Notes: a model not told the origin generated them from the sequence alone. Counted from the first letter of the stretch, positions 41,550 to 63,532 are shown. The stretch: DNA of 64,000 nucleotides from Blastocladiella emersonii ATCC 22665 (GCA_025594325.1 JANHCV010000001.1:4340001-4404000), one strand, 5' to 3'. Numbers and translations: made by a program.

Positions 41550-42592
41550 ATGGGCAGGTGTCCTTTTACCCTTGCCGCGCGCCGCCGCCGCACCATGAAT
41601 CATTCCCCGCATTTTGCGAAGCCGCCGACCGCCGCAGCGCCATGAAATCGACTTTTTTCGACCGCCAACGACGACTGCGACGCTGTCGCCACGCTGGACC
41701 ATCCGTGGAACGGACCCCTGCATCTCCGCTGAGCTGTGGAGGAGCGTTACTCGGCGTTTCCGTCACGGCCACGGGCGAAACGCAGGCTGTTTTGCGGATG
41801 GTTCTGCGTGACCACCGAAACGCCTCACGCCGTCACGCCGCCCAAAACGCCGTCACTGTGCCGCTTCCGGTGACGCTACCCGCCTCGCTATCACGCCCCT
41901 GCGCTCGTCGTCCCGGCGGAATGATTCATGCGCGTCGAGCGGCGCGCTCGATTTCGTGCTCCCGAACGTTTTTCTAACGTTGCACCCGTTGCCGACCTCC
42001 AGGTAAGCCTCGTGGTCTGAACGCCGCCCGCACTCTGCGCAACCGCCGCCGCGACCAGCGCTGGGCCGACAAGCAGTACAAGAAGCGTGCCCTCGGCACT
42101 GCCTTCAAGTCGTCGCCCTTCGCCGGTGCCTCGCACGCCAAGGGTATCGTCCTTGAGAAGATGTGCGTTTCTTCCGCCCGCTCGAATTGCTGCCTTTTGG
42201 GACACGCGAAACTGACGCACGATCGCCCTCCTCGTCCCGCCGCGCAGTGGTGTTGAGGCCAAGCAGCCCAACTCGGCCATTCGTAAGTGTGTCCGTGTCC
42301 AGCTCATCAAGAACGGCAAGAAGATCACCGCCTTCGTCCCCAACGATGGTTGCCTGAACTACATCGATGAGAACGTACGTTTCTCGCCCGCTCGCTCGAC
42401 CTTCTCCTGTCCCGAACGCGACGCTGATGTCTCACCCCGCTCCCCTCACAGGACGAGGTTCTCATCGCCGGTTTCGGTCGCAAGGGTCGCGCCGTCGGTG
42501 ATATTCCCGGTGTCCGCTTCAAGGTCGTCAAGGTCTCGGGTGTCTCGCTCCTGTCGCTGTACAAGGAGAAGAAGGAGAAGCCCCGTTCGTAA
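41550..42592 (+). CDS. RPS23: 40S ribosomal protein S23 (uS12), 143 aa; exons 41550-41553, 42003-42162, 42248-42374, 42452-42592; first intron is GC-AG
   Basis: [73 protein letters not shown]. The spliced length is 432 nt. Confidence 0.96.
41577..41947 (+). promoter_or_regulatory. Long-range inverted repeats closing RPS23 intron 1
   Basis: 41594-41606 CATGAATCATTCC is the exact reverse complement of 41918-41930; 41577-41585 GCGCGCCGC is the exact reverse complement of 41939-41947. The two stems are nested with an 8x8 internal loop. Confidence 0.8.
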
Positions 42593-43374
42593 GCTGTTCG
42601 CTGTCGGACGCACCCTCGCCCTCGCGGCGGCGCGGCGCGACTGTCGTTCCAATATAAGCATTTCACCGAGGCCCTCCTGCCTTGCGTTTGTTGTGCTCAT
42701 CACCGTCGTAGCTGTCCGCGCCGGCCTCGGTCCGCGTTGACCGAGCGGCCAGGGTCCGATTCGTGAGGACATGAACTGGCACTCGACCGAGTGCGGGATC
42801 ACACGCGAGCAGAAGATCAAGTTCATCGGGCGGGCCAGAACGCGTGTCTCGCACCCGTGTCTCAGGTCACGCGGACAGTGCGAGACGCGTCGCGCGACGC
42901 GTTTTTCGCGCGCGCGTGTTGACCACCTCGAGCCCAGTCTTTGTGGACCCGCGCTATATTGTGCGAGAGCGCGCACTCGGTGCAACGCGATCGTCTCTCA
43001 TACTGCTTGCCTACGAGTAATGGAAGGGGGGACCGTCGCCTTGTGCGCCCAATGTAATCCACCGCAACTAAACTGATCGAAGCCCGTGACGAGACGAAGC
43101 GCTTTCCGCCCGCCACCGTGGCTGTATCGATTACCTCCGCCCGTCGCCCACACCCCGCACACTCTGGCACACCGCGCGTCAATCTACCTCTACCCACATG
43201 CGCATCGAGTGTTCTGCTGCACCCCTGGCCTGCCGACTTCCTGCATCCTGAGCAGCCGCCACTCCACCGCACTCTGTCCCTGGTCGCAGTCCACTACGAC
43301 CAACTCGTGCTCCACAACATCTCGGCCTCGCGGCGGGCACTCGCACCCGATCTACATCTCGTCGACCGACCACC

Positions 43375-45853
43375 ATGGCCAAATTCGTGAGCCGCCTCCT
43401 GTCCGCGCGCGGCGGCGCCATGGGGGACCTTGAGCCTCGCGCCGAGGGCGAGGTCGTACGCCGGTCCAACCAGTCGCTCGCCATCTCCAACACGGACCTC
43501 TCGGGCGGCGGCGGCGGCGGCGGCGAGACCATTGCGCACGGCGGCGGCGTCAAGATCGTGGTCAGCGGACCAAGTCTGCGCAGCCTCACGACGCCCAGCA
43601 TGAACGCTCTCAACGACCGCTCGCCGACCGAGGTCGCGCAGGTCACCTTTGACTACTCGCGCTTTCGGCTCGTCTGGTCCGTTTCCGCGGCGCGGTCGTG
43701 TGTGTGATGCGCTCGCTCATGCGTTCATTCGTCGTGTAGTGGCGTCGAGTATCCCATCGCAGCGGCGCTCGTACCCGACAAGCCGGTCCAAACGATTGTA
43801 CGGCAACACATCCCTCGCGAACCGACCACCGCTGACCGCTCGCGGTCGTGTAGGACCAGGCGCACGAGACTCCGATCCTCAGTCTCGGTCTGTCCAACTC
43901 GGGCATGCTCATGGGCACTGGCTCGACCACGGGCCAGCTCGCCGTGTGGAGCTTCAGCGACGGCTCCAAGCTCATGACGCTCGAGTGCGACGTGCCCGGC
44001 CCCGAACCCACGGGCTTCGCGCGCGTCATCAAGCCGTTCCGCCGCGCGTCGGTGACGGGCACTGTCGGCCAGGACCGCTCCCGCGGCGCGACCGCGCCGA
44101 GTTCCGCGACCACGAGCCCGTTCGGCAGCTCGACGCTCTCATCCAACCCGGGTTCCGTCACCTCGATCCAGCCTCTTCCACCACCGGCCACGTCCATGGC
44201 CGCGGCTGCCGCGGCCGCGACGGCAGCGTTTCGCGCATCGACCATCGCCGAGGAGTCGAGTCCGCCTGGCACGTTCTCGCGGCCGACTGGCAGCGAAAGC
44301 TCGTCCATTGGCGGCAGTACGCCTGACAACCTTGAGGCCGACGACATGGTGCCCTCGAACGGCGCACGTCCGAGCTCGGCCTCTGTCTCGAGCAGCTCGC
44401 GCGGCGAGTCCCCGACGGGCTCGGGCTCGGTGCGCCCTGAGTCGGCCGGCGGGTCCGGGTCGCGCCTCAGCCTCACCGAGCGCTGGCGGCGGCGGCGCCA
44501 CTCGACGGCCGAGGCCACGCTGCACATTGGCCGGTCGCGCGTCGGGTCGGTCGCAGGCGAGTCCGGCGCGGGTCAGGACCGACGTGATTCGAGTGCATCG
44601 TCGCCGTTTCCAATGGTCGCGCGGCCGGGCGTCTATGCCATCGCGTTCTCGGCCGACGACGCGTATCTCGCGTGCGCTGTCGCGTCCATTTCGGCCGGCC
44701 ATGTCATTCACGTTTGGAAACTCGCCAGTCGGCGACTCAAGGTACGAGACTCGTCGTTGGGTGCAGTCAATCGCGGTCGCTAACGCATCGCACGTGTCGC
44801 GTAGGCAACGCTCAAGGGACACACGATGCGCGTGAACGCGGTGCAGTTCCTGAACGAGCCCGTAGGGTCCGCGGACCTGGTACGTAGCGCTTGACACTCG
44901 GTCGAAGTCCGCTTTTGCTCACACGATGGCCGTCATTCCAGATCTCGGCGAGCAGCGACGGCACGATTCGGTTCTGGGATCGAGCTCGAGGCCGAGGTAC
45001 GCCTGCTCATCATTTCACTCATCACGATCCTCGCTCACTCGTACGCGCGCGGCAACACTTAGACCATGGCATTCTGACAACGGGTTCGGCGGTTATGGAC
45101 TTTTCGCTGCTCCAGCGCGACTTGCTCATCACGGCGCAGTACAGCGGCGAGGTCCAGGGCTGGTCGCTCATCCAGCAGACCAAGCTGTGGTCGGTCGCGG
45201 ACCCGTTCCAGTCGTCGCCTGTCCTCGCCGTTATCCCCGGTCCAGGTACGTCGGATCGAGGTTGCACCGTTGATTTGCGCTCACCCCTTGATTTCGCGTG
45301 TGCTAGGCGATGCGTTCCTCTCGTTCAGCAAGGACGGCATCGCGCGCATGTTCTCGCTGGCCGATCTCACCGTCGTGAGCGAGTTCACGTACGTTTTTTT
45401 TCGTCTCGGGTCCACGACCCATCGCTGAACTGACCGTGTTGCATCGAGTAGACATTCGTCTTTGCGCAAGTCATCCAACTTTACGCGAATGTGCCTGAGG
45501 TGCGTTGCGGGTGCCGCGTCATGATCGAGTCGTGTCACTCACGTACGCATGTCTGCTCGTAGCGCCGACTTTGGCGTCCTCGCGGTCGGGTGTACGGACG
45601 GGTCGATCATTCTTTGGGACCTCGCAAGGACAACGCTCCTTGCCATCGTCAAGCAGCACAAGTACGTGCCGCGCGCTACTCTCAACTCCCATGACACGCA
45701 TGCTAACCGCTCTCCTGTAGTCTCAAAGTCAGCGGGCTCATCTGGAACCTCGGCGGCAACCTCCTGTCCACGTCCGAAGACCGCAAGCTCATCATCTGGG
45801 ATGGAAGGGAAATCGGGACCCAGTTCCTCAGCTCCCAGGTGGGCGACTTTTGA
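43375..45853 (+). CDS. Multi-exon WD40-repeat protein with Ser-rich insert, function unknown
   Basis: Repeats GTGSTTGQLAVWS, IHVWKL..LKGHTMRVNAVQF, ISASSDGTIRFWD, LAVGCTDGSIILWDL and LLSTSEDRKLIIWD, joined by canonical short introns. Confidence 0.8.
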
Positions 45854-46099
45854 CACTTTGGCGCCAGTGTGTGAATACAATTGTGATCTACCAACCTCGA
45901 AACGCGAACGGCGGCGCGACACGGAACTGTCTCGCGGCGGTGTCTCGCGTTGAGGCGGCGCCACGCTTCACGTGCACCCAGCGCCACTTGGTCGCCGCCT
46001 ACCGCCCTGCCCACGGCCTGCTCGCGGCCGCCTCAGATCGCGGCCGCCGCTCGTTACCTGTTCCGTCTCTGCGATAACGTCCATCGAGCGCTAAACAAC

Positions 46100-47290
46100 A
46101 TGGTATTTTGCCATCCCATGAATCGACACATGCACCCGCGGGCGGGAGGCGCATGAATGCCGTCCCGCTCCGCCACCGATTGTCGCGGCCCGAGGAACGC
46201 TGCGGCGACGCTCGGGCCGCCCGCCTCGCGAGGAAGTGGTGGAACGGTTGCGCGCTCGCCTCACACGACGGGGTGAGCACACCGGTCCATCCACCTCCCT
46301 GCCCGTTTGAACGCAAAACGGCGCCTCGCCTTGTTTCGGGGCGACGGCGCCGAATTTTCCGTCCCGCAACGAAGCGCCCGTTCGGCGTCCTGCTGTCCGG
46401 CGCGCGAGTTGCCGCGCTGGAGAAATCCGGCGCGGAGGGATAGCGCACGAGGCTGCACACGGACTGCTGCCGACGACGACGACGACGGCAACCGCACACA
46501 CGGCGGTGACCGCCTCGGTTGCATTGCGGCGTTCCGGCGCCCGTGCGTGTGTGCTGGACGTCTGCCGTCGTCGGCACGCAATCGCGTCCGTGTGCACGGC
46601 AATCGAGCTGGCGAGTGGGAAGGATTCGCGCACGTTGACCGCCCGTCCGCGGGTGTCGTGTGTGTGCAATCTGGACTGCGATTTTTCTTCGAGCCAGCGC
46701 CACTTACACTTTGCCTCGTTTTCCTCGCTCTGCAGGGTATCGACATCAAGAACCACCACGTCAAGAAGACGCAGCGCACCGAGGCTGCCTCGCGCAACCC
46801 CTACCTGCTCCTCCTCGTGAAGCTGTACAAGTTCCTCGCCCGCCGTACGGACTCGTCGTTCAACAAGGTCGTGCTCCAGCGCCTGGTCAAGTCCAAGATC
46901 TACAAGCCCCCCGTCTCGCTCTCGAAGCTCGCCGTCGAGATGAAGGGCCGTGAGGACAAGATCGCCGTTGTCGTTGCCCCCATCACCGACGACGTGCGCT
47001 TCCACGCCGTCCCCAAGCTCACCGTCGCTGCCCTGCGTTTCACCGCCTCGGCCCGCGCCCGCATCGTCAAGGCCGGTGGTGAGGCCATCACCCTCGACCA
47101 GCTCGCCCTCCGCGCCCCCACCGGCGCCAACACGGTCCTGCTCCGCGGCACCCGCAAGCGCGAGGCCGTCAAGCACTTCGGCAAGGCCCCCGGTACCCCC
47201 GGCTCGACCGCCAAGCCCTACGTCCGCTCCAAGGGCCGCAAGTTCGAGCGCGCTCGTGGTCGCCGTGCCTCCCGCGGTTACCGCAACTAA
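46100..47290 (+). CDS. RPL18: 60S ribosomal protein L18 (eL18), 185 aa; exon 1 is the ATG only (46100-46102); intron 46103-46735
   Basis: [74 protein letters not shown]. Confidence 0.96.
46126..46663 (+). promoter_or_regulatory. Long-range pairing of the ends of RPL18 intron 1, plus an internal long hairpin
   Basis: 46133-46141 CACCCGCGG pairs with 46647-46655; 46126-46132 pairs with 46657-46663 (one G:U, one bulge). Internally, 46454-46464 pairs with 46586-46596 and 46468-46478 with 46566-46576 (both perfect 11 bp). Confidence 0.75.
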
Positions 47291-47464
47291 GCAACTGCTC
47301 CTCGAGCTCTCGCCTGCGTTGCCGTACCCCATGGTGGCAGTCCGTGGTCGTTATGTTCGGAGCTGCTGTAATACACTCTGGACCTCCTCGATCGGGACTC
47401 CTTTCAAGGAAAAACAAACCGTTCATTCTCGTCTCGTTGAACATGAGTCAGTTGCTCTCGCTCG

Positions 47465-50400
47465 TCATGGCTTCTGCCCCGCCGTCAGCCCTTGGAGCAC
47501 GCCGAACAGGACGCCCTCGAGCACGTCCTGCATCAGGTCTTGCGGCGGTGCATGCTGATCGGGAACGTGCCACTCGGCGTGGCCGTGGACCTTGTCCAGC
47601 ACGTCCTCGTCCTGCGTCTCCTGGAACACGGCGTCGAGGCATGCGCGCAGCGTCGACCCGATCGCGGCCACCATCTCGGCCGTGTCCACGGCGGCCGCCG
47701 CCGCTGCGGGAACAGAACTCGCGCCCGCTGACGAGTCCACGCTGGCCGACGGTGGCAGCGCCGTGGGCACGTAGCGCGGGACCACGTTGGCCGCGAGCCC
47801 CGCGACCTGCGCCGTGGTCTCGATGCGCACCGCGAGCTCGCGCTTGCTCGGCCCGCCGCCCGCGCCGCGTAGGGGTGAGCCGGCGCGGCCGCCACCGCTG
47901 CCGCCGTGGATCGACGGGAGCGCCGTCGAGTACCGGTTCAGCGACGACGAGGTGCGGTACGACGACGCGGCCGAGGTCGCGAGCCGCTTGGATTTCTGCG
48001 CGACCTCGGACTGGAGCTAGATGGGGGCAGGCGGGGTGGGAGAGGTCAGCGACGATGGCCATGGCCGCCGTGAGTGCGCGACGAACGTACTGCTTGCATG
48101 TTGGGCCCGTAGAGACACTCGAACAGGTGCGTGCTGCGCCCCGGCGCGGCGCCGCCGCGAATGTAGACGCGCGCGACGAGCATCTGGCCGGGCTCCAGCG
48201 AGCCGGCCGGCGGGATGATACGGACCTGCTCCTCGTGGTGCGCGAGCGAGCGCCACAGGAAGCACATGGGCGCCGTCGACGGGTTGCGCAGCACCACGAC
48301 GCGCGTCTGCAGAGCATGGACGGGGAGCGCGACGAGGTAGATCTCCTCCTGGTCGAGCACGAGCTCGGCCGCGTCCCCGGATGGTCGCTCTGTTGACGGT
48401 TTGCTGCCCGAGCGGGCGACGAGGGCGCCGGGCGAGGGCAGCTGGCCGCGGCCGCTGATAGTCACCTCGAAGGCCTGGCCGCCGACCATGGACACGCGCA
48501 CGGTTGACTCGTGCGCCTTGGCCTCGATCGGGTAGAAGGTGAACGGGACCGCGACCGACTCGCCCGGCGCAATTGAGCCGTGCGGCTTGAGGCAGTCGAA
48601 GATGCGGAAGCCGTGGTTCTCGTCCTGCGTCTACATGGCCATAGTCATGTCAGCTCTCCTGGTAGTGGCGGTGAGCGCGTCGTACCTTGTCCAGCTCGTC
48701 CGTGGCCACCGAGTACCACACGGTCACGTCGCTGTTGTTCGCGAGCGGCATGGGCGCGACGAGGGGCTCATCACGGTCGAGCTCCACGTCGCCGAACGTG
48801 AGGTTGTCGCCCGCGTGGAAGAGGTACCCCTGGTGGTGCTGGACCGTGGTCGCCGAGAGCAGGAGCGGGATCACGCCGTCACATTCGGGCCCGCCCTTGA
48901 CCTGCAGCTGCACAGCCTGCTCGTGCAGACCGATGGCGCGGTGCGCGCACTCGATGGTCAGCTTCTGGAGCTCGCCGGGCCGCAGGTAGCCGCTCTGTTT
49001 GACGTGAGCGGTTAGTGCGGAGGCGAGCGAATAAGTATGCATGGCCACGTACGCGGTGCGAGATGGTGAAGGTGCGCGACTCGTTGAGCATGTTGCTCGC
49101 TTCCTGCTCCTGCGCGACCTACACGCATGGCCATGGTCAGCTCGGACTTGTACCCGTGGAGATGAGCGATGCGACACGTACCACGGGATCTTGCGGCGAC
49201 GTCAGCGACCACTGCAGGTCAACGGGGCCCGAGTTGCGAAGCACCCACTGGACCCGCGTGTCGGGACACCCGAGCAGCCGCGCGCCGAGGACCACGTCGA
49301 GCACGCGCTTCGACGAGCCGCGCTGCAGCGCCTTGTTGACGCTCTCGATGTTGCACGAGCGGTACAGCTCGGTCGAGCTGAGGTCTGGATGGGACGGGCG
49401 CGAGGAGGTGAGCGATCGCGCAACAATGGCCACGAGCGAGAAAAGTCGTACCGTTGCCGCAAACGTGAAGGATCTCAAGTGTCGGGAACGTGCCCGACGC
49501 AACCACGGCGCAAAAGTCGGTCCACTGGTCCTCGGGCACTGCGTCGAGCTCACCGCTGCTGTGCCGGCCGAGCGCGATCTGGACCTTGAAGTGGTACTCG
49601 CGCTGTTGCCGCAGGAACAGGTGGAGCATAATCGGGCGCGATGACTTGGCCGGGACGCGGCCAAACGCGTCGAGAATGCGGTTGTTTGGCGCCGGAGGTC
49701 CTAGAAAGTCGAGGAGTCAGTAGCAGACACAATGACCATCGTCGCCTCGCGTACCGTAGGTATTGGACTGCAGATCGAGCTCGCGGAGCCGCACCGCGTA
49801 GTGGACGGCGCACTCGGTCGGGTTCTCGATGAGCACGTCCTTGGCCGTCGTGATGTGCGCTGTGTTAATGAGCACGTGCGGCAGATGGACGCGTTGCGAC
49901 GCGGGCTGGATCGTGCCGACGAAGGCGGCCGCGCCCACGGCCACAGTCATACGGGTCTCCTCCGTGCCCGCGGCGCCGCGCTCGCCGCAGTCGGCCAACC
50001 GACACGCGAGCGGGATGTGGAACAGCGACTTGCCCGCCTGTGTCGGGCGGAACGACAGCTCGAACTCGCACGTGCCGTGCGGAGGCAGCTCGCCCGAGTC
50101 GGGCGAGACGGCCAGCACGTTCGTGTACGCGTTCGGCACGCGCCACGCGAAGCGGATCGGGAGGTCCGACTCGCTGCGCAGCGTGCCAACGCGGCGGCCG
50201 ACCATGCCGACGAGCGTCGGCGCGACCATGAGCGCAGCCGACGGGCGGACCGAGATCAGCGGCCGGATCACGCGGACGCAAAGTTGAAGTTTCTACACGT
50301 CGCGACGTTGCGTCAGCGTGGCCACCGTGCACCAAGAGAGCCCTCGCGTACCTGGCCCGAGGCGATGCTGCCGTTGAACGCACAAAGTAGACCGTGGCTC

Positions 50401-53151
50401 AGGAACCCGGCCTCGAGCTCGTCCGCGCGGCTCGGGTCGAACGTGGCCCGCACGAGCTGGCTGCCGCCGACCGGGATCAGACCCGCGGACGGAGACAGGC
50501 TCCACGGCATCCCGTCAGTATCGCCTTCTTGACTCGAGGTCGCGGCGATGGTGCTGGCCGCGGTGCGACCGCCAGGCACGAGGTGGTGGAACGAGAACTG
50601 CGCCGGGCAGTCGCCCGTGTTGACGAGGCGGAATGTGCGCGAGACAGCTGGGCCCGAGGCCGCGGTTGGCGGCAGCTCAATCCGGCTTCCGGCCGAGATT
50701 TCGACGCTGGCCAGGGCCATTTGCGGCGAGAGCGTGTTGCTACGGATGAAGGACCATCGTCAGTCACGGCCACCGACCCAACGAAGCGCAAGACGCACCC
50801 AACGACGCTGAGCGGGAGGTGGAACGACGGCATGATGGCCTGGTCGTGCGTAATGAGCCGAAAGTTGCGCATCACCTTGGGGAACACGAAGCACTCGAGC
50901 TGCGCGTGGTCAACCGCGTCGTCGACCTCGGGTCGATACGAGACGCGGAACTGTGTGGTGCCCTGCGGCGCAATCTCCTGGAGGCTGGGCTCGACGAGGA
51001 AGTGCGAGGTCTTGGCGTCGTGCCACACGCAGACGACCTTGGTGTGCGAGTGGTTGGTCACGGTCACGATGCGCGGCTCGATGAAGCGGTACCGCGCGCA
51101 GGTGCCGAAATCGACTGTGTCCACGTCCATGGCCACGGGCGTGTGCGCCGTGGCCGCGATCGTCGAGGTGTCGGCCGAGTCGGACCAGTGCAGGCGGCCG
51201 TCGTCGCCCTCGGTCAGCGTGCCCAGGTTGATCATCTGTTCGACCGTTTCGAGGGATCAGTCACGGATGTTCGCAGACGTGTAAGAGAAAAGCGTACCTG
51301 GTCGAGCTGCTCGGGACCGTAGAGACCGAGACCGACGGACTGCAGGTGCTGGAAGTGGTCGAGATGCCGCGGGAGGAGGGACGGCGGTCGCTGGCGCTCC
51401 GTGAAGCCTGTACCGACCACGTCAATGGTCTACACGTCGCGATGGAGTAGGGTGAGCAACAGTCGTGAGATAACCCACGAGTAAGCGTACAAAGTCGGAG
51501 CCATTCTCGACCAGGCAATGAATGCGGCGATGGTACACGATGGGCGCGCCGGGGCGGAACGTGATGCTCATGGCGACCGACGAGCCGGGCGACACGACCA
51601 TGACGGGTCGCAAACTTGGCGTAGATGGATGTGGGCCGACGAGTGCCGCGTTGCACGCCTCGAGGTAGAAGGCGCTGGTGCCCTCGAGACCCTGGAACTG
51701 GATCGTGGCCGGCGTCGTGCCCTCGTTGATGATCTGGAGGGCACGCGTCTGGTCCGCGCCGACGCGCAGATCGCCGAACGCGACGACGGAGAGGGAAGAG
51801 CGGATGCAGGCCGACGAAACCTGGGCGCGGAAGAGGATGCGGATCGGCGTGCTCATGCCAGGCGACAGCAGCTCCCAAGGCTCGGCGATGGTCGAGCCGG
51901 GCACCGTCGGAGCGAGGACGGCGAAAATGTCGTGCGAGGCGCCCGGGTCGAGCACGCCGCGGACCCGCGAGAGCGTCACGGCGCACGCGTTGGCCTCGGC
52001 GAGCGACGTGGAGAGCTGTCGTAGCGTGTAGCTGGCCTTGACCTACAGTGAGAGTTAGTCGTGGGATCGCGCGGTTCGCTGGCCGCAAGCGACCGTACCA
52101 TGGACGGGTTGACGACCTTGAGCGCGACCTTCTTCTTGGCGCCCATGTCGACCGAGCCGAGGTCCATTTCGGAGACGGGATGTTCTGGGTCGGCGGCTCG
52201 CGCGAGGTGCAGCTTGGCGAACTTTCCGACGCCATGGAGCTCGAGGCTCTGGGTGATGGGCGAGTGGGTCTCGCCGTATCGACACACGAGTTGGACATGA
52301 TGCGCGGAGGCGAGCTACACGGCGCAACGTCAATCAAGTGCGAGTTTCCGGGCGGTTACATCAAACGAACCGTGGGCCGGTACGTGACGACGATGGTCGC
52401 CCGCTCCCCCGGTTCCAGCTCGCCCGCAGCCGGCTCGACCGAGAAGGGCGAGTTTTCTGGCACCTCCCAGCGGAACGCGGTCCGCAGCTCGCCCGCGTTC
52501 TTGAGCGGGAACGACTGGGCCGACGGCTCGTGAATCGCGCACAGGCCAAAGTCGAGCTTGGAGCTGAAGTCGAGGCGGTGCTCGGGCAGCGTGGCGAGGA
52601 GGGGGATTGAGAATTTGCCGAGCGACGAGGTGAACTCGACGGAATCGCGGTAGACGGCGGGCGCAATCGGACGGAACGTGATGGGGAACGAGCACGACAT
52701 GCCCGCGCTCAGCACGCGGGTCTCGGGGTAGTCGAGGAAGAAGACCTTGGACTGCGGCAGGCGGTAGCGTAGCTTGAGCGTGCGCGTGGTCGAGTTCTTG
52801 GCGGTGAAGACCAGCGTGTACTCGTTGCAGGGCTCCCTGCGATGCGAACGGCTGGTGAGCGATCGTCACCGACCGGCGAGTGCTGGACTGCGGGTGTACT
52901 CACCATCCCGTAAAGTGCACCGTGTCGGCACACTCGATGCCGGTCTGGAGCTTCCGCTCGGCGCGCGTCATGCTCTGGCGGACGGCGGCGTGGACGTGCG
53001 TGTCGCGGGCTCCACGGTGCAGCACCTGGCCCTCCATGAAGCCGCTGTCCTGCTGCGTTACATGGCGAGTTGCATCTTTGGAGTCGTGCAGCGGCGCAGC
53101 ACCGACCCGCTTCATGTGCGGGGCGGCGGCCTTGCTTGCGACGCTCGGCAT
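47465..53151 (-). CDS. CFAP65: Cilia- and flagella-associated protein 65 (CCDC108), many exons, tandem ASH/MSP Ig-like domains
   Basis: GIECADTVHFTGWEP..LVFTAKN..LRYRLPQSKVFF..LSAGMSCSFPITFRP..YRDSVEF..ATLPEHRL matches the CFAP65 N-terminus. Later ASH-type repeats include F.W....F.V.P..G.L.PG, RNFRLI..Q..MP.FHL and FSVGGQT. Exact exon boundaries were not all resolved. Confidence 0.82.
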
Positions 53152-53593
53152 GGTGTGTGCGTTGTGCTTCAGGAACGAGCGCCGCCGTCGTGTTGGCGAT
53201 CGCCATCCTGCACGCGCGCGAGGCAGCCGAATTCGGGGTCCGGTTGTCACGCCAGGGGTGGGAGACGCGCGGAGATGGCGCGACGCGTCTCGCGTCTCGG
53301 TCACGTTGCGCGCCTGCCACGGTCTCTCATCGGGCCAAGCCTGTGAGTCGGAGCCGGCGGCCGCTGAGTCGAAGTCGGCGGTGCGGGCCGGCCGCGTCCG
53401 CTTCCTCCCTCGCTCGGCCACAGTTCGCCGACCCCGGCACACCCCACTCCCTGCAACGGATTTCGTCCCATGCAATCTTGACGTCTACCATCAGCATCCA
53501 CGGCAACTCGATCAGCCGACAGGCGCATACCACCAGCTTGGCTGCTCCACACCCGGCCACCACCCATCACCACCCACTACCCCACTCTCGCCA

Positions 53594-56500
53594 ATGGCTG
53601 ACGGCAGGAGGACTGTCTCGCCGCCCGGCCGCGACGACGACGCCATGGACGTCACGCCCGACGCACCGCCGCCGCCACGATTTGCGCCGCCGTCGATCAT
53701 GCCGCCGTCGCTTCCGCCGATGCCGCCACCCACGTCGTCTCTCTGTGGATCCGGGCTCCTGCTGCAACCCTCGACCATTGCGCAGACCCCGAAGCGCTCG
53801 CTCTACCTCAGCGACCAGTCGCCCGCGCCGCTCATGTGGACCCCGTCCATTGAGACACCGTCGGCCGCGCGGACCGTCTCGGGCACCACACCCGCGGTCA
53901 CCCCGGTCAGCGGCACTACGCCCTCGTCTCGAGCGCCGCACTCTCGCCGATCGGGCCGCCCGCGCCATGTCGATGCCGCCTCGAGCTCGCTCGACGCCGT
54001 CTCGAATCTGCCCAACGACGCACCGAGTTTCGCGCAAGAGCTCCCGCCCGAGCTGCGCGCCAACGGCAGCGACGACGACCGGTCCGTCGACTTCAGCGGT
54101 TCAGTCCACTCGCCGCTCGCCCCTGTCGCCCCGCTCTTCCCGTCCCCGTGGCACGTTCACGTCGTCCAGGTCGCCGACGGCGACGCGTCCACGCAGTCCC
54201 AGAACCACGTCGCCGCGACTCCATCCCGGCTGCCGTCCTCGTCGGCGCCCGCCAACGTCGGCTCGAGCTCGGTCGCGTGCACGAGCTGCATGGCCTCGGT
54301 CTCGTGCGTGTGCGGCTCGCCCAGTCGCTCGCCGCGCGCCCACGCTGACGGCGACGCGTTCGGTCTCAGCCTGAGCGCGCCGTCTCCCCGGAAACGGTCG
54401 CGCGGCTCGCCCCGTGCCGCCCTCGTCTCAGCGCCCGTCTCGACACCCGTCTCGGGCTCGGACACCGATGACTTTACCGACGACGACAATGACGATCTGC
54501 CGGCCGATGCGCGTCCGCCGCCGCTCAAGCGCCAGAACGTTGCCGACGGCCCCGCCGTGACGGCCGTCGACGAGCTTGACTCGCAGGCGCACCTCAGCTC
54601 GCAGACTTCGGTGCACTCGGTAAACGGCCTGCTGCCCACCTCGGCGGCCATCATCGACGCCGAGCTCGCCGACACGTCGGTGCAACTCGACGCCGATACG
54701 TCGGCCCTCGATGCCGCGAACTCGGCCCCACACCAGCCCGGCTTCGAGGACGACTCGCAGGCCAACATTCTCTCGCCGCCGCTTTCACCCCGCATCGTCG
54801 TGAACGGTCCGCTCCCTCCTGCGGTTGCGGTCATGACCGCAGAGCTGCACCCGGTCCTTGCCGCTGCACCCGCTTCCCTCGCACCGCCATGCGATGCGCC
54901 AACCCCCGACTTCACCATGGCCGAGCGTTCAAGCCCGATCATGTGGGGCGACTCGCAGGACGGTGCGACCGCGGTTCCCACCGACCCGGCGGACCTGCCA
55001 ATGCCGGCGCCCGGATCGCCGCTCATGCCGTACCCGGACCCCGTGGCGGTCGTGCAGTCCGTTGCCGAGCCCGCCGTCATCGCGACGCAGCCCTCGACCT
55101 CGACCGAGGACGCCCCGAGTCTCTCGATCGCCTTGACCCAGCGAGCGCTCACCGACAGGTCCGTTACATTCCCTCTCCCCGCCGCCTCCACATCAGCTGC
55201 TGACCCGAATCGCTCAAGCAGCCTCGACCGTTCCGATACCGTGTCGTCGGCCGTCTCGCTGCCCATGCCGTCGCCCGCGCCGCTTCCCGAACCATCGCCT
55301 TCGTGCGAGGAGGTCGCCGAGCTGCCACATCCGCCATCACCCGGCTCGATCGAGTCGGCCGTACCGCTGGCACCTTCCTCACCACCACCAGCTGTGCCCG
55401 TGTCACCCGCACTACCCGCTCGCGAGGCCTCGCTTTCGCCGGTCGCACCTGTTGTCCAGCGCTCGCCGACGCCCGTGTCGGCCGCGCCTGCGCCCGCGTT
55501 CGCGACTTACTCGGTCGTACCATCAGCGGCTGTGCTCTCGTCACCAGCACCGCCCGCTCGCGAGCAGCTCTCGATTTCGCCGGCCCGGCCCGTCGTCGAG
55601 CGGACGTCACCACCACCCGCACCGCCTGCGCCCGTGTTCGCCGCTCCCTCGGTCGCACCACCACCTGCTGTTCCCGTCGACGCCGCGACCGCGTCGTTCG
55701 CTCGCGAGGCCTCGATTTCGCCGGCCCGGCCTGCCGTCGAGCGGTCGCCACCACCGCCTGCGCTGCTTGCGCTTGCGTTCGCTGCTGCTTCGGTCGTACC
55801 ACCGCCTGCCGCTCCCGCCGGCGCCGCTGCGGCATCTTTCGTGCCCGCGGCGTCAACTACGGTCGTCTCGGCTGCGTCAGCCACCTCGGCTATCGCCGCC
55901 CCGCCAGCTCCGCCGTCGAAGCCCAAGTACCGCCTCGCCGTTCGTGCTCCCGCGCCCCCAAAGGGCCGCAGCTTCGCCGAGTTCCAGCAGGGCTTAATCG
56001 ACGACCTGCGCGGCCTGCGCGGCATCCCCGCCCCGAACAACGCGCCGGTGCCCGACTACATGCCGGCGTTCGCGCCGGCGAGAACCGTCGTCGACGTCGA
56101 CGCGGCACCCGAGACTGCCCACGTCCCGTCAGTCGTCAAGTTCGGCTCCGCCGCGGCGCTCGCGCCTGTGCCCCAGCCCGAGCCGGCCGTAGCCGAGGCC
56201 GAGCCCATGGACGTGACCGTGGAGCCGGCGAACGCGCCGTCGCGCCTGCCCGCTGCCGCGCCCGCACCTCGGCCCGACCGCGCCACTGCTCGACCCAAGT
56301 ACCGGCTCTCAGACCGGCCCGCAGAGCCCGTCCAGATGAAGCGGTCGGCCGCCGAGATCAAGGCGCTCCTCCTCGCGGACCTCGAGATTGGGAGTCAGCC
56401 GAACGAAGGCCCGCTTCCGGTCGCGCAGTTCGCGAGCGCCAGGTCGGTGGCCCCGCCGACACGTCCCCGACCCGCGCCGCCCGCGTTCGTCGCGCCCGTG

Positions 56501-59500
56501 CGCGCTGCTCCCCGTCCTGCCGCACGCGTCGTCCATGTCGATGGCGACGAGCCCAAGCCGGCGCCTGCGGTCCCGCCAAGGCCAGTCACAGCGTTTGACC
56601 CGCCCCCGGGCGTCTTCGTCACGGGCGCCGGCCGGCCGACGCTCGCGCCGTCCAAGGAGGGCCTCGAGCGCGCCCGAAAGTGGATCAACGCGCCGTCCAA
56701 CGACGATGCACAGGCGGAACTCGCCGCCTTCGCCACGTCCTCGCAGAAAGCCAAGCCGGCCCGGCCCGTCGTGCAGCAGCAGTCTCGCCTCGTGCAACGC
56801 GAGCCCGAGCCGCTCGACCGCGCGCGCTCCATGACGCCGCCGTCGCGCCCGCGCCCCCTCGGCGCGAGTGCGGGACCCGCAGTCACCCCGGCACCAACGC
56901 CGACGCGGGCTGTCGGGTTGCACACGGCGGCGACCCCACGCACCACCACGTCGCAGTTCCGCCCGCCGATGCGCCGGTCGTCGAGCGACGTGTCGCTCGG
57001 TCCCCGCACACCGCTTATCGTAACGCCCGCTTCGACCATGTCGCGGCAGTCGTCGTTCGCGACGCCGAGCCTGCCGCCGCGTGCAGCATCGGCCACGCCA
57101 GCTGTAGCGCCGAGCGTGCCCGCGACGCCGGTTCGTGGCCCCCGACCAATGTCCACGCCGGGCACCATGTCCGCGCCATCCACGGCAGTGAGGCCAGCCG
57201 CGCCCGCATCCGTGACCGCGACCGAGAACCAGGCCCCGCTCCGCCCGTCGCACACGCGCAAGTCGTCCAACGGCACCATGCTCTCGATGCGCACGCCGTC
57301 GCGGCCCGCGTCGACGCTCGGGCGGCAGGCCGCGAGCCGGCCCATGTTCAAGACGCCGCTCCGCGCTCCCTCGGCGGCCAAGGACGGGCAGACCGCGACG
57401 GCTCAGCTTCGGACTCCAGCCACGACGCCCGCGGCGGGGCGCCGGCGGTCCAACGTGCGCGCTTCGACGCCAGCGGCGACGCCGACTCGCACCGCGGGCG
57501 TCGCGTCCGTGTTCGACCTGCCGCCAGTTCCCTCGCTGGACCGCGTGTCGCTGCGCTCGCTTGGCGCGCCGGCCGTCGGCCGCGGATCCGTTCCGCAGTG
57601 GATTGCCCGCATCACGTCCGAGACCGCGGCATGGTTCCGGTTCCCGGGCGCTGCGCAGTGGGGTCCCTCGGACGTGCACGCCGCGCTTCTCGCCGCGGGC
57701 GCCGTGCCAAAACTCGTCAGCGAGGACTGGACGCGCAACCACTACCGGTGGATCGTGTGGAAGCTCGCGTGCCAGCACCGTGCGTACGCCGCGAACCCGG
57801 CCGCCGCCGCGCAGCTCCCGCCGTTCACCACGGACACGGTGGTGCGCCAGCTGCTGTACCGGTACGAGCGCGAGGTGGTGCGCGCCGAACGGCCCGTGCT
57901 CCGGCGGATCGTCGAGCGCGACGAGACGGCGCACCGGCCCATGGTCCTGTGCGTGGCGCGGATCGTGGCGGTCGAGGATCCCGAGTCGGGCAAGGCCATC
58001 GACGCCCTCGAGCTGACGGACGGGTGGTACTCGATCACGGCCAAGCTCGACGCGGCGCTGCTGCGCGCCGTGGACAACGGGCGGATCGTGGTCGGCGGTA
58101 AGCTCCTGGTCGGCGGCGCGTCGCTGGTCGCATCAGGCGACGGGGTCCCCGTCCTCGACACCGTCCCGACGTGGTCCGCGACGGGGTCCGAGCTGACGCC
58201 GCCCGACCACGCGGCGGTCTCGCTCAAGCTGTGCGGCAACTCGACCAAGCCCGCGCGGTGGGACGCCAAGCTCGGGCACGTTGCGGGCCCGCCGACGGTG
58301 CCCGTGGCGCTGCGCGCGCTTGCGGCGGACGGCGGCCCGTTCTCCGAGATCGCGGTCCAGATCCTGCGCGTGTACCCGACCATGTACATGGAGATCTTCC
58401 CGAACGGCGAGAAGGCGTACCGCAACCTCCGCGAGGAGCAGGCCGCGCAGGCCGACTACGAGCGGCTGCTGGTCCTCGGCGGCGGCGCCGAGGGCACCCG
58501 CGTCCGGTCGTTTGCGCGGCGGCCTGCTGACGCGATCGACGACGAGGAGCTCGCGCGCGCCGTTGCGCTCGGCACGATCCAGCACGCGCTCGCCGAGGTC
58601 TCGCCCGCGGTCGCGGCGCAGCTGCAGGAGCGCCTCGCGCAGCTCCCCGACCACATGGTGCACGCGGCGCGCGAGGCCGTCAAGCGCAACGTGACGCCCT
58701 TCTTCCGCATCAAGGTGGCGTGCGCGCGGCAATCCGCCGCGCGGTGCGTCGACGCCGACGGCGACCCGGTCCCCGTCGCGACCGCCGTCCTGACCGTGTG
58801 GCGGCCCGACGAGTCGATGCTGCACGAGATTCGCGAGGGCCGGTACTACCGCGTCGTGCACGGGCAGGTGTCGGGCTCGTTCCGCGACGTGCTGCGGCTG
58901 TCGACGACGCGCGGCACGCGGTGGGTGCCCCTGGCCGGCCCCATCGGGGACGCGCCGTCGCCATACGTCCCACGCGAGACGGTGCGCGATTTCGCGCAGC
59001 TCGCCGATACGGGCGACGGGCGCGCGCGCGAGATCGACGTCGAGGGCGTGGTGGTCCGCGTCCGCAAGCCCGCGGCGCATACGGCGGCGCCGCTCGAGAT
59101 CCATCTCGCGGACGCCAGGGGGTGCGCGTTCGCCGTGTTCCGCGCGTACGTCCAGATGTGGATCCCGTCGTTCCACGACTCGCTCAAGGTACGCCGTTCG
59201 GGTTCCTGCCCGTGTCGACCAGTTCACTGACCACCTCAACATGTAGCCCGGGACGAGCCTTGCGCTGCGCAACGTGCGCTGGACGGGCGACGACGCCGAG
59301 TGGCAGGTCGCGCAGCTCGCCGCGACCGACGAGACTGAGATCCGCCGCGTGTCTGCGGCCGCGTCGCTGCCCGCGCCGCTGCACGAGCTCGTCGCGCGGC
59401 TCGACGCGGTGCGGTACGGCGGGTATGCGCCGGCCAAGCGCGCGCGCGGAGGAGGTGGGGATGAGGGGGTCGACTGGGCCGCGTTCTTCAGTCAATCGCC

Positions 59501-59504
59501 GTGA
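53594..59504 (+). CDS. BRCA2: BRCA2/Brh2 homologous recombination mediator, ~1,950 aa; intron 59189-59246
   Basis: Single BRC repeat FVTGAGRPTLAPSKEGLERARKWI; helical domain WTRNHYRWIVWKLA; OB1 VLRRIVERDE..MVLCV..ELTDGWYSI..LKLCGNSTKPARWDAKLG; OB2/tower ILRVYPTMYME..LTVWRP; C-terminal OB fold. Confidence 0.93.
55380..55830 (+). repeat. About three degenerate ~46-48-aa Pro/Ala-rich tandem repeats in the BRCA2 N-terminal region
   Basis: REASLSPVAPVVQRSP / REQLSISPARPVVERTSP / REASISPARPAVERSP start at 55421, 55559 and 55703 (spacings 138 and 144 nt), with DNA-level similarity. Confidence 0.75.
56615..56689 (+). other. BRC repeat (RAD51-binding) within BRCA2
   Basis: FVTGAGR..PS..GLERARKWI fits the FxTASGK..S..SLxKAKxLF consensus. 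Confidence 0.85.
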
Positions 59505-59573
59505 GGCAGAAGGGGCAGCAAATGCAAAGTGTATTTTCATTCGGAGTTCGTGCACGGGTTTGGTGTGGTTTGG

Positions 59574-61721
59574 TTAGGACGACGGGACGCGGCACCGTGC
59601 CGCCGGTGCAGCGACTGGGTCGGCGGCGGCCGCGACCTTGACGACCGGGACCCGGACGACGGGCACGGGCACGAGCCCGCGGCGCCGACGCTTGGTCGCG
59701 GGCGACATCGGTGCGAGGGATCCGTTCTCGCTTGCCGCCTCGTCGTCGTCGCTACCGCCGCCGTCCGACACGTCGCCGGGTGCAGGCGACGTCGGGTGAG
59801 ACCGCGGCCGCTTCAGCGGGCTCGCAGTGCTGGATCTGATGATGGCGGGGACGCGGGAGCTGGGCACGACGACCACGTGGCGCGGGGAGCGGGACGGGCT
59901 CTTGGTGGGCGTGGTGTTCCCGCCGAGCGCGGCCGCGGCGATGGCCGAGGCGAGCACGCGGTCGGGCGTGCGGAGGAGCGCGGGCGACTGCGGGCGCGAG
60001 ATGAGCGGCGCGCGGCGCGCGGGGGTCGGGGATGGTGGGTCCGCGGGGGCGGCGGGGCGCGGTGGGGAGGCGACGGGGGACATGAAGGTCGCGGGAGCGG
60101 CTGCTGTTGCTGCTGTCGCTGTTGTTGGTGGATCGGCGGCGGCGGGCGCGATCTCGGGCTCGGGCTCTGCGACCGTCTCGGGCTCGGGCTCGACCTGGCT
60201 GCCGCACGAGGACTGGGTATCGGGCGGAAAGTCCTCGCGCGGCTGCGCATGGCCGGCCGCGTCGGCGGCAAAGTCGGGGACCGCTGGCGGCTCGGGCGGT
60301 GGTGGTGGTGGCTGCGAGGCCTCGGCGGCGGCGTCGTCGTCGACCGTCTCGCTCGGCGGGGTCAGAGACTCGATGACAGCGGCCGGTACAGCGGGCCGGT
60401 CACCGAGCGATGGCGGCATGGGCGACGACCGTGCGCCGAGCGAGGGAGGCATGGGCGACGACCGTGCACCAAGCGACGGGGGCATGGGCGAGGACCGGGC
60501 CGACGGCGTGCTCACGAGCCGTGGTGTGCGCGGACACGGACTCGACGGCGGGGAGCTCGCAGCAACGCCGCCGTTGCGCGACGGGCTGGACGAGACGGGC
60601 GCGGACGAGAGGTCCGACGTCGCCAGCGTCGCCGACGCGATGGTACTGGGCGTGGCGGTCGCCGACGACGACGACTGGGTGAGGCCGAGGAGCGAGTGGG
60701 CGAGCGGGACGGGCGTGGCGCCGCCGACACGGCGGCTGAACGAGGAGGCGGCGGCGGTGGGCGAGCGCTTGACGCTCGACTTGAGGACGCGGCGGAGCAT
60801 GGGCGACGGGCGGGCCGAGGGCGACCCGAGCCCGGCGGTCGTCGAGGCGGTGCGGTCGATCTCGCGCGGGGGTTTGAGGATGGACCGCGGGGTGGTGACG
60901 CGGCGCGGGCTGGCGAGCGGGCTCGACGCGGGCGTGTGCGGGCCCGAGCGCGGGGTGCCGGAGAGCGAGCCCGGCGACTGCTCGCCGCGCACGACGGGCG
61001 AGTCGGGCGGCAGCGTCGAGTCGATGATCTCGGGGCGCAGCGGCGGGCCAAAGGAGATGTTGCGGCGCGGGGTCTTGGACACGGACGCGGACGCGGAGCG
61101 TGATGGGGTGCCTGATGGCGCGGCGGCCGACGACGTCGGGGTCGCCGAGGTGCCGAGGAGGGCGGCGACGGCGTCGGCGCTCGGCGTAGTGGGCGAGGCC
61201 GCCGCGCTCGGCGGTGCGGGCGACGCGGACAGGCGGCGCGGGATGGTCTGCGAGAGGAGGCGCAGGGCGGACCGGGGCTGCGCGGCCGTCAGGCCGGGCG
61301 ACGTGGTGGCAGTCGCCGACGCGGGCGCGGACATGGGCGAGCCAGGCGCCGAGGTGGTGCCGCTAATGAGCTCGAAGCGGAAGCGGCGCACGGACACGCT
61401 GCCCGCGCCAAACTCGATCAGGTCGCCCGACGCGAGGATGCGGTGCTCGCCAGCGGGGACGGGGAGCGTGTTGACGCAGAAGGCGGCTTTCCCGACGTTG
61501 TGGATGGCGACGCCGGCGGTCGAGTCGCCGGTCCAGAGCACGACGGTGCACTGCTCGGCGCACATGTCCGGGGTGACGAGGCGCACGTCGACGTGGGCGG
61601 CGCTGCCGATGGTGTTGGTGTGCTTGGTGAGCGGGAAGATGCGCTCGGGCAGGTTGGCCGCCTGCGGCACGTAGACGAGCCGCGCCGCGACGGCGGGCGG
61701 ACCGGCCACGGGCGCGGGCAT
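59574..61721 (-). CDS. Ki-67/RepoMan-like protein: N-terminal FHA domain + PP1-binding (RVxF/KiR-SLiM) segment + SILK motif, 715 aa, intronless, S/T-P rich
   Basis: FHA-like NTIGS..DVRL..QCTV..VN..LASGDLIEFG..RRFRFE; RRNISFGPPLRPEIIDSTLPPDSPVVRGE; PRSILKP. ATG at 61721 lies in the frame of ORF 59574-62018. Confidence 0.75.
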   Translation of the reverse strand: MPAPVAGPPAVAARLVYVPQAANLPERIFPLTKHTNTIGSAAHVDVRLVTPDMCAEQCTVVLWTGDSTAGVAIHNVGKAAFCVNTLPVPAGEHRILASGDLIEFGAGSVSVRRFRFELISGTTSAPGSPMSAPASATATTSPGLTAAQPRSALRLLSQTIPRRLSASPAPPSAAASPTTPSADAVAALLGTSATPTSSAAAPSGTPSRSASASVSKTPRRNISFGPPLRPEIIDSTLPPDSPVVRGEQSPGSLSGTPRSGPHTPASSPLASPRRVTTPRSILKPPREIDRTASTTAGLGSPSARPSPMLRRVLKSSVKRSPTAAASSFSRRVGGATPVPLAHSLLGLTQSSSSATATPSTIASATLATSDLSSAPVSSSPSRNGGVAASSPPSSPCPRTPRLVSTPSARSSPMPPSLGARSSPMPPSLGARSSPMPPSLGDRPAVPAAVIESLTPPSETVDDDAAAEASQPPPPPPEPPAVPDFAADAAGHAQPREDFPPDTQSSCGSQVEPEPETVAEPEPEIAPAAADPPTTATAATAAAPATFMSPVASPPRPAAPADPPSPTPARRAPLISRPQSPALLRTPDRVLASAIAAAALGGNTTPTKSPSRSPRHVVVVPSSRVPAIIRSSTASPLKRPRSHPTSPAPGDVSDGGGSDDDEAASENGSLAPMSPATKRRRRGLVPVPVVRVPVVKVAAAADPVAAPAARCRVPSS
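60403..60501 (-). repeat. 3 x 33-bp coding tandem repeat (ARSSPMPPSLG)x3
   Basis: Units 60403-60435, 60436-60468 and 60469-60501 are near-identical. Confidence 0.9.
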
Positions 61722-61726
61722 GGCGG

Positions 61727-61756
61727 GTCGGTCGGTCGGTCGGTCGGTCGGTCGGT
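61727..61756. repeat. (GTCG)7 microsatellite immediately 5' of the Ki-67-like start codon
   Basis: Seven perfect units at 61727-61754, ending 5 nt upstream of the minus-strand ATG at 61721. Confidence 0.9.
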
Positions 61757-62110
61757 GTGTGCGAGGAGCGGTGGCTCGGTGGCACACGTTGCGCAGAGTC
61801 GCGCGCAGTCGTTTTCGTTGCAGATTCGTCGGGGGTCGGGGGTCGGGGCCGTCGTCCGTCCGCATGCAGGTCGAAGCGTGCGAACAGCGGCCGACTGGGG
61901 CGCCTGACTCATTGGGAAGGTGGTCGCGGCGTTCAGGGCCCCTCGACCGGGGTGGCAGGTGAGTCAGCTGATGCGCTCGTCTGTTGGTTCGCCGTCGCCG
62001 CCGCGCCGTTCCGCGCACGGATCAGCGCGGCCCGCGAGCCCGCGCACGTCGACCGTGACGTCTGCCCGCCCCTCTACGTGCCAGTCCCCACCCCGCAACT
62101 CCCCGCCATC

Positions 62111-62439
62111 ATGTCGTACTGGAAGACCGCCGGCCTCTCGTTCGTGCCTCTCGACTCTGGCCGCCGCGGATCCCCCTCCCGCTAACCCGTGCCCGTGCCC
62201 CTCCAGGTACCTGCAGTACCTCAACATCGCCTCGCGCGCGACCCGCAACGCCCTCAAGGCCGACCTCAAGGTGGTCGCTGCCCGCCGCGACGAGCAGACC
62301 CTCAAGGTCTCCAAGTGGGTCCAGGGCAAGCAGGGTGAGGCTGTACGTGCTCTCCCTCCTATACTGCACGGCGAAGACCGGTCGCTAACTCCGACACGCT
62401 GCGCTTCTGTAGAAGGACGTCCTTGCCCCCAAGGCCTAA
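62111..62439 (+). CDS. ATP15: Mitochondrial F1 ATP synthase epsilon subunit, 63 aa; exons 62111-62139, 62207-62342, 62413-62439
   Basis: MSYWKTAGLSYLQYLNIASRATRNALK..KVSKW..GKQGE; both introns are canonical and in phase. Confidence 0.92.
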
Positions 62440-62752
62440 GCGGCGACTCCCTCGCGCTTCCTGTACATGCCCTCGTCCGGGCGTGGTTGTCACGGCGGGT
62501 GACCCTGCTCGCCGTCGGCTGCGCCACGGGCTTCTCTCCCCTCACCGAAATTCCTACCGTACCCCTCGTCTACTCGCGCCGAATGCTGAATGGATCGTGT
62601 TTTGAATCACCATCGCGCGCGCGCCGCTCATCAGATCGTCACGTCCGAGCCAGGAAGTGAGTGCAGTCAGGCAGAACAAATCAAATTGGACAGGTGGTGA
62701 GAGGGGAGATCGTGGGGTAGAGACAAGGAGAGTAGCACTCGGGTCCGAGCAC

Positions 62753-63532
62753 TTAGTGGTGGTGGTGGTGCTCCTGCTCGAAGCGGATGCCGCAGTAGCC
62801 GCACGAGTGGTTGCCGGGCTGGTCCAGGTTGATGTACACCTTGGGGTGGCCGAGCGGGCCGCCTACGTGATCCGCGAGTCAGCGACCGCGTTGCGAGGAC
62901 CTGAGCAGAGGAAGGGTACGAACCGCCGCCGTCGCACGCGACGATGCGCTTGTTGACCTTGCGCACGGGCTCCTGCGCGATCAGGTCCATGGCCGGCGTG
63001 GGCTTGGGCTACACGGCGCACGCAAGGTCAGAGCTATGGTCTCCCATTGAACAGAACCCGTCGAACGCACCTGAGCCTCGAGGTCAATCTGCTCGAAGCG
63101 GGGGCCGGTCATGACCACCTCCTTGCGCTTGTAGTAGGCGTAGTCCTTGGACGACACCGTCGCCGTGGCGGTCGCCTTGGGGGCAGCGGCCACCTCGGAC
63201 GAGAGGAGACGCTAGACATCAACGGAAGTACGTGACGTCGTCAGGGCCGAGTCCACCTTGTGTTGCTCCATCACCGCTGGGTGTGCTCGCGAGGGAGGGT
63301 GGGGTTCGCGCGGGCGAGATCGGCGGGGAGCAGGCTCAAGCGCCCGTCTGCGAGAGACACGGTCCGGTGTTGATACATGGTAGGCCCTGGGCCAGTCGTG
63401 ATACATTGCATGTTGCGCGGTTCCCTCCCTCCTCCCTCCCTCGCAAGTCGATCCATGGTCATGGTTCCGAGGCAGGAAACCCACCAGAGCGGGGCGGCGC
63501 ACGGCCGCGGCACGGGACGTGAAGCGAAGCAT
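62753..63532 (-). CDS. NDUFS6: Complex I 13-kDa zinc-binding subunit (NDUFS6/NUMM), 127 aa; exons 63485-63532, 63071-63211, 62924-63008, 62753-62862
   Basis: Presequence [21 protein letters not shown]; [60 protein letters not shown] (zf-CHCC); ends in HHHHH. Confidence 0.92.
63286..63447 (-). promoter_or_regulatory. Long-range 14-bp stem in NDUFS6 intron 1
   Basis: On the minus strand CTTGCGAGGGAGGG (63447-63434) pairs with CCCTCCCTCGCGAG (63299-63286): 13 Watson-Crick pairs + 1 G:U. Confidence 0.72.

Follow-up and report, generated by a model that had tools for sequence, protein, structure and literature searches.

Predicted zipper-like closing stems in long first introns of highly expressed Blastocladiella emersonii genes

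We analyzed a 64-kb window of the genome of the zoosporic fungus Blastocladiella emersonii ATCC 22665 (GCA_025594325.1, JANHCV010000001.1:4340001-4404000, hereafter C1:4340001-4404000; GC content 64-75%) and found that the long first introns of three of its genes, RPS23, RPL18 and NDUFS6, each carry complementary arms near their two ends that are predicted to pair into a long-range closing stem. The presence of these stems in the three introns was confirmed as real and statistically sound. The reading we favor, with a probability of about 0.6, is that zipper stems in the pre-mRNA close the long first introns found in a few highly expressed genes: in host introns some 4-10 times the genomic norm, an arm about 23-47 nt past the 5' splice site would pair with an arm that stops about 29-49 nt short of the branch point, and the intron interior, about 135-490 nt, would be looped out. 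We infer that such stems exist in living cells and aid or enable splicing. This is the established yeast zipper principle in an early-diverging fungal lineage and not a new system. The initial annotation of the window, made from its sequence, had proposed a recurrent "intron-collapsing" system while citing a yeast precedent, and it is the precedent that matches, since the same principle applies (PMC2536676, PMC12350175, PMC13232506).

Position of the closing stems

The zipper definition of Rangan et al. (2025; PMC12350175) was applied to minimum-energy folds. By this definition, a zipper is a helix of 6 bp or more with high helix confidence that bulges out no more than 5 nt. It begins 10 nt or more past the 5' splice site and stops 20 nt or more short of the branch point, and the two linkers outside it total 42-85 nt, a range derived by modeling of the yeast spliceosome. 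For all branch distances the branch A was inferred from CTRAY/YTNAY motifs 25-29 nt before the acceptor. Closing stems were present in both the minimum-energy and the centroid folds of the RPS23, RPL18 and NDUFS6 introns. The arms reproduced at the offsets first described for them, with 5' arms starting 23, 23 and 37 nt past the donor and 3' arms ending 55, 72 and 74 nt before the acceptor, respectively, or 29, 42 and 44 nt before the putative branch A. Total linkers were 52, 65 and 81 nt, all within the 42-85 nt window, and the helices comprised 14, 24 and 14 bp with predicted pairing probabilities of 0.93, 0.89 and 1.00 (ensemble thermodynamics). A fourth long intron, in RPS10 and described below, has a 16-bp helix (pairing probability 0.86) that ends 49 nt before its branch A; in all four introns the helix is longer than 6 bp, bulges out no more than 5 nt, starts more than 10 nt past the donor and ends more than 20 nt before the putative branch A. 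As for the fixed geometry that had been claimed for the long introns, the steric limits of the yeast spliceosome already predict it, and therefore no lineage-specific system is indicated. A strict intron-definition spliceosome in this lineage can at most be surmised.

The RPS23 intron (449 nt, GC-AG, 41554-42002, plus strand) follows ATGG at 41550-41553, which is joined to 42003 onward (ATGG|GC...cag|GTAAGCCT, giving MGKPRGL). Its GC donor at 41554 was assigned because the reading frame requires it: the frame is restored only by this span, and use of the GT 4 nt 3' of the GC donor would lead to a stop. The putative branch A, placed by consensus, is 41977 (CTAAC). In the minimum-energy and centroid folds the 5' arm covers intron positions 24-56 (41577-41609, plus strand) and the 3' arm, also recovered in the zipper test, positions 361-394 (41914-41947, plus strand), with a perfect, AT-rich 13-bp core between 41594-41606 and 41918-41930. 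The RPL18 intron (633 nt, 46103-46735, plus strand) begins at ATG|GTATTT and is followed by an exon 2 that encodes eL18 residues 2-185; the nearest relatives of the protein are those of Blastocladiella britannica (86%) and of Allomyces and Catenaria (85%). Its consensus-based putative branch A is 46706 (CTTAC). The core stem pairs intron positions 24-48 with 535-561 (46126-46150 with 46637-46663) and can be extended by a nested continuation, on the 5' side to position 82, so that the plus-strand arms span 46126-46184 and 46598-46663. On the minus strand, the NDUFS6 gene model has a first intron of 273 nt (63212-63484, GTGGGT...TAG) with a putative, likewise consensus-based, branch A at 63241 (CTGAC). 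Its 5' arm spans intron positions 21-57 (63428-63464, minus strand; core 38-51, 63434-63447) and its 3' arm positions 181-217 (63268-63304, minus strand; core 186-199, 63286-63299); the 5' arm starts at position 38, or at 21 when the outer helix is included.

These introns stand out from the intron complement around them in both length and donor sequence. An intron finder based on codon bias and splice signals was run on the window plus 200 kb downstream (264 kb in total) and returned a short-intron consensus of GTACG[TC]...CTGAC...YAG with a median length of 63-65 nt, which bears out the short-intron norm claimed earlier and agrees with expressed sequence tag data, in which B. emersonii introns are mostly 60-79 nt (PMC2773782). 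The published annotation of strain ATCC 22665 counts 19,375 introns (PMC9730499). Whereas 95% of short introns have donor scores of at least 6.8, RPS23, RPL18 and NDUFS6 scored -3.6, 1.9 and 3.6, their donors being the weak or non-canonical GCAGGT (41554), GTATTT (46103) and GTGGGT (63484) instead of GTACG[TC]. The RPS10 first-intron donor is canonical, unlike these three. In yeast, splicing is enhanced by the RPL7B zipper, which offsets a weak signal (PMC13232506). The zippers of the three window introns may compensate for their weak donors.

Closing stems and chance pairing

Complementarity between intron ends could arise by chance in GC-rich sequence and be selected by eye. The predicted zipper energies were -27.2 kcal/mol for RPS23, -46.3 kcal/mol for RPL18 and -28.7 kcal/mol for NDUFS6. 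Although 12-17% of shuffled sequences formed some zipper, none of 80 shuffles per intron formed one as strong. Natural segments were found to beat their own shuffles above the nominal rate (11-12% at p<=0.05), a point in favor of chance, and natural non-coding controls were therefore added. A zipper of any strength was found in 9% of these controls, and one of at least -27 kcal/mol in 0 of 168, after one matching segment, itself an intron, had been set aside; three controls with pseudo-zippers of -22 to -24 kcal/mol proved on inspection to be intergenic or antisense. For these three introns, the stems therefore withstood a comparison with shuffled sequence of the kind called for at the outset.

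Uninterrupted helix runs were compared between the first 100 nt and the last 130 nt of each intron, against 200 shuffles and 170 natural controls. The longest runs by Watson-Crick pairing and with G-U pairs allowed were 13 and 13 for RPS23, 9 and 15 for RPL18, and 11 and 14 for NDUFS6. In the same order of pairing rules, these were matched by 0 and 3 (RPS23), 22 and 1 (RPL18), and 0 and 1 (NDUFS6) of the shuffles, and by 2 and 9, 13 and 4, and 3 and 7 of the natural controls. The AT-rich 13-bp stem of RPS23, which had been held to argue against chance, is accordingly above chance level (0/200 and 2/170). Looser statistics were marginal: end-to-end duplex energies (RNAduplex) gave p values of 0.03-0.17, a poor statistic because many helices are strung together and shuffled sequences come close to the same score, and local pairing alignment of the intron ends gave p values of 0.007-0.05. 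Since stems of the observed energy were absent from shuffles and natural controls for three of three introns, and since closing stems recur in RPS10 and in Allomyces, we regard chance pairing as very unlikely. A hairpin that had been noted in a 129-nt intron of the window, by comparison, did not hold up and was at chance level (z +0.78).

Folding energies of whole introns gave a different picture from the closing stems. The RPS23 and RPL18 introns were strongly structured (z -3.8 and z -6.7 to -8.0, respectively), while the folding energy of the whole NDUFS6 intron was at chance level (z -0.56) and that of the RPS10 intron was unremarkable (z -0.86). Most of the RPL18 value (-6.7 to -8) is supplied by a near-perfect internal hairpin at 46454-46596, reminiscent of a hairpin that RNase III targets in the intron of yeast RPL18A (PMC13232506).

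Structure of this extent raises the possibility that the long introns are regulatory switches, in which binding of a ribosomal protein or some other factor to the folded intron would repress its splicing or set its timing, with the zipper as one of two alternative folds. Autoregulatory intron structures are known from yeast RPL18B, RPS22B, RPL7B and RPL30, and autoregulation of RPL18B requires the intron structure (PMC13232506). The RPL18 and RPS23 introns are folded far beyond what a zipper needs, the donors are weak, and a long RPL18 first intron is retained at an identical site across the phylum. However, NDUFS6 and RPS10 have unremarkable energies and a closing stem nonetheless, and no alignable conserved internal structure was found between Blastocladiella and Allomyces. 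We consider a switch unlikely as the explanation of the stems; it is also compatible with zipper closure and does not exclude it.

Recurrence, counter-evidence and the yeast parallel

A de novo search of the 264 kb for further long introns recovered the first intron of RPS10 (630 nt, L020:8936-9565, minus strand), 119 kb downstream of the window. From positions 48/553 inward, 63 nested pairs close this intron over long range, and the stem persists in the centroid fold; its outer helix (48-65 with 536-553) has 16 bp and an energy of -25.4 kcal/mol. The arms lie 47 nt past the donor and 77 nt before the acceptor, and the stem was matched by 3 of 60 shuffles under a linker limit of 100 nt that was set post hoc. 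Closing stems are thus present in 4/4 known long introns within the 264 kb, three of which fall under the strict definition, and in all four cases the host gene is highly expressed and the intron its first. The other de novo candidates were mostly exon-skipping combinations and were rejected, leaving RPS10 as the sole survivor; a 198-nt candidate proved to be two short introns.

The comparison with relatives covers RPL18 only. An intron is present at the identical ATG|GT site of RPL18 in six other Blastocladiomycota genomes, measuring 450 nt in B. britannica, 572 and 575 nt in the two paralogues of Allomyces macrogynus, 586 nt in a second Allomyces genome, 516 nt in Catenaria (re-annotated), 126 nt in Sorochytrium and about 1,178 nt in Coelomomyces. 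The RPL18 model of Catenaria anguillulae (L008:2589-3107) seems to be mis-started, as the ATG|GTATG start shared across the phylum, with the 516-nt intron, lies 412 nt upstream of the annotated one. All three Allomyces introns contain predicted zippers of -11 to -26 kcal/mol with pairing probabilities of 0.55-0.85, and their linkers of 25-26 and 38-41 nt (total 64-66) resemble the 23 and 42 nt of B. emersonii, even though the intron sequences cannot be aligned between Blastocladiella and Allomyces. The recurrence asserted from the three window introns therefore extends to an intron that had not been seen at that stage, RPS10, and to the Allomyces orthologues of RPL18.

Several observations weigh against the zipper reading. 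Of the 36 pairs in the closing stem of Allomyces, the three sequences share 29 unchanged; 3 carry compatible one-sided changes and 4 are broken in one sequence, with 0 double compensatory changes, so that the compensatory evolution looked for as a check is absent among the three Allomyces RPL18 introns. Conservation of the arms (0.75 and 0.67) exceeds that of the interior (0.57) only modestly. No zipper was predicted for the RPL18 intron in either B. britannica or Catenaria; such gaps show the same patchiness as zipper presence across yeasts (PMC12350175). The linkers of RPS10 total 96 nt, above the 85-nt limit, and the sample comprises four long introns from 264 kb of genome. The predicted donor-to-branch path (30, 24 and 7 for RPS23, RPL18 and NDUFS6) is no shorter than the shuffle means (27, 27 and 25), a measure that fails to discriminate because random GC-rich sequence brings its ends together too. 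The earlier proposal that looping out shortens the effective intron is therefore upheld by linkers inside the steric window but not by predicted distance. Finally, sense arms had no consistent energetic advantage over antisense arms, and G-U counts were likewise undiscriminating; selection on pairing at the RNA level is therefore unproven.

The lack of a strand advantage bears on a further explanation, that the arms are a by-product of events at the DNA level, either inverted transcription-factor motifs or hairpin-prone inverted duplications by which the introns grew in length, and that pairing in the RNA has no role. As this would predict, pairing is equally good for antisense and sense arms; a CCATGA-type motif occurs in both arms of RPS23, as CATGAATCATTCC in inverted copies, and in both arms of Allomyces RPL18, as GCCATGACC; and the internal hairpin of the RPS23 intron is formed by its two inverted GGATGG boxes. 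A non-coding inverted repeat of 376 nt, 100% complementary with a 300-nt spacer, also lies downstream of the window at L017:7369-8420 (C1:4491369-4492420). Yet the zipper cores of RPL18 and NDUFS6 share no motif, and the natural non-coding controls lack such stems. Furthermore, the 5' offset was smaller than the 3' offset in 6/6 independent cases (23/55, 23/72, 37/74, 47/77, 22/64 and 25/83), an asymmetry that fits sense RNA and speaks against a symmetric DNA palindrome. Across introns of 273-633 nt, arms offset in this way from donor and branch keep clear of the branch site and the pyrimidine tract, as splicing geometry would have it. A purely DNA-level origin thus seems improbable to us. The 376-nt repeat itself may represent a foldback element, a gene for a hairpin RNA or an error of assembly.

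Fungal introner-like elements typically yield long, structured introns. Introns derived from such elements or from miniature inverted-repeat transposable elements combine above-normal length with stable predicted folds, as is the case here, and their terminal inverted repeats could in principle have supplied the arms. The arms, however, lie inside the introns, at distances of 23 and 55-74 nt from their ends, and the presence of the RPL18 intron at the same ATG|GT site across Blastocladiomycota marks it as ancient. A search of the 32.65-Mb genome with two of the introns returned only their self-matches, and we find an insertional origin scarcely credible.

Zipper closure, the reading we retain, has close counterparts in S. 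cerevisiae, where the zippers of RPS17B/RP51B (UB1-DB1), RPL7B and RPS11A (PMC2536676, Rogic 2008; PMC12350175) likewise lie in long, mostly ribosomal-protein introns among short ones. The likeness extends to the positional limits of the stem, the 42-85 nt linker (exceeded by RPS10), enrichment over shuffles, poor sequence conservation and patchy occurrence among orthologues. In the functional sense, a yeast zipper is a stem whose disruption reduces splicing and whose repair by compensatory changes rescues it (Libri 1995, Charpentier and Rosbash 1996, as cited in PMC2536676). The B. emersonii stems differ in being longer and more stable by prediction (14-24 bp core, -27 to -46 kcal/mol), in their host, which belongs to Blastocladiomycota rather than Saccharomycotina and has a genome of 64-70% GC, in the weak or non-canonical donors of three of four introns (one of them GC), and in that one host gene encodes a mitochondrial complex I subunit. 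Yeast RPL18B also has a long, highly structured first intron (PMC13232506; bioRxiv 10.1101/2025.03.14.643126), but its element lies mid-intron and is not a zipper. B. emersonii RPL18 is likened to it by gene family and not by homology of sequence or structure.

Zipper studies have so far been conducted almost entirely in budding yeasts, a group with a highly reduced set of introns. Stems within the yeast steric window in a near-basal zoosporic fungus with short default introns and long ribosomal-protein introns suggest either that the zipper solution is ancient or that spliceosomes tuned to short introns are pushed toward it. They also supply a testable rule for annotating unusual long introns, including those with a GC donor, in GC-rich genomes.

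Sequence boxes of the long introns

All four long introns have sense-oriented CCATGNATCGAC-like motifs in common. The pattern CATG[AGT]A?ATCGA occurs in four copies in the 264 kb, one per long intron and always in sense orientation: CCATGAATCGAC adjoins the 5' arm of RPL18 (46116-46127, plus strand), CCATGAAATCGAC was found by motif search in the RPS23 intron (41640-41652, plus strand), CCATGGATCGAC adjoins the 5' arm of NDUFS6 (63447-63458, minus strand), and the RPS10 copy lies at about L020 9439-9450 (minus strand). The related CCATGAATC lies within the RPS23 5' arm at 41593-41601. The longer pattern CCATG[AGT]A?ATCGAC likewise has just these four copies in the 264 kb. Exact CCATGRATCGAC has 29 copies genome-wide, compared to 0 for the reversed control.

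A second box, GGATGG-N6-GTG, with the extended form CGGATGG-N5-CGTG-N2-CAC, occurs five times in the 264 kb in either orientation, and four of these copies are within the RPS23, RPL18 and RPS10 long introns. RPS23 contains one at 41796-41810 (plus strand) and an inverted second copy at 41690-41704 (minus strand), RPL18 an antisense one at 46278-46292 (minus strand), and RPS10 one at about L020 9396-9410 (minus strand; motif search). Each of the three Allomyces RPL18 introns (L006, L029 and L007) has the box as well, oriented as in B. emersonii RPL18. GGATGG-N6-GTG is likely a DNA-level element of the ribosomal-protein regulon. The conserved boxes suggest regulatory content as the reason for intron length.

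A more far-reaching and rather doubtful proposition is that the long first introns of ribosomal-protein and growth-linked genes in Blastocladiales constitute one conserved regulatory module. Such a module would combine a sense CCATGNATCGAC element at or beside the zipper 5' arm, a weak donor and the zipper stem with, in ribosomal genes only, at least one GGATGG-N6-GTG box that is kept in Allomyces. If true, a dedicated factor would couple the transcription of the ribosome regulon to its regulated splicing, and the stems would not be passive compensation for length.

Rfam covariance models gave zero matches at E<=1 on either strand of window positions 40000-64000, a span that takes in the three window introns, and a known intron-hosted RNA family such as a snoRNA or miRNA was rejected on that basis. 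Among the short introns, ATGGCC, often as ATGGCCA, was found in 7 of 48 confident cases, where shuffles lead one to expect 0.4 and reached at most 3 in 300 trials; examples are the introns at 70405-70467 and 70863-70926 (264-kb coordinates, window plus L009-L028), and the motif may be an intronic signal.

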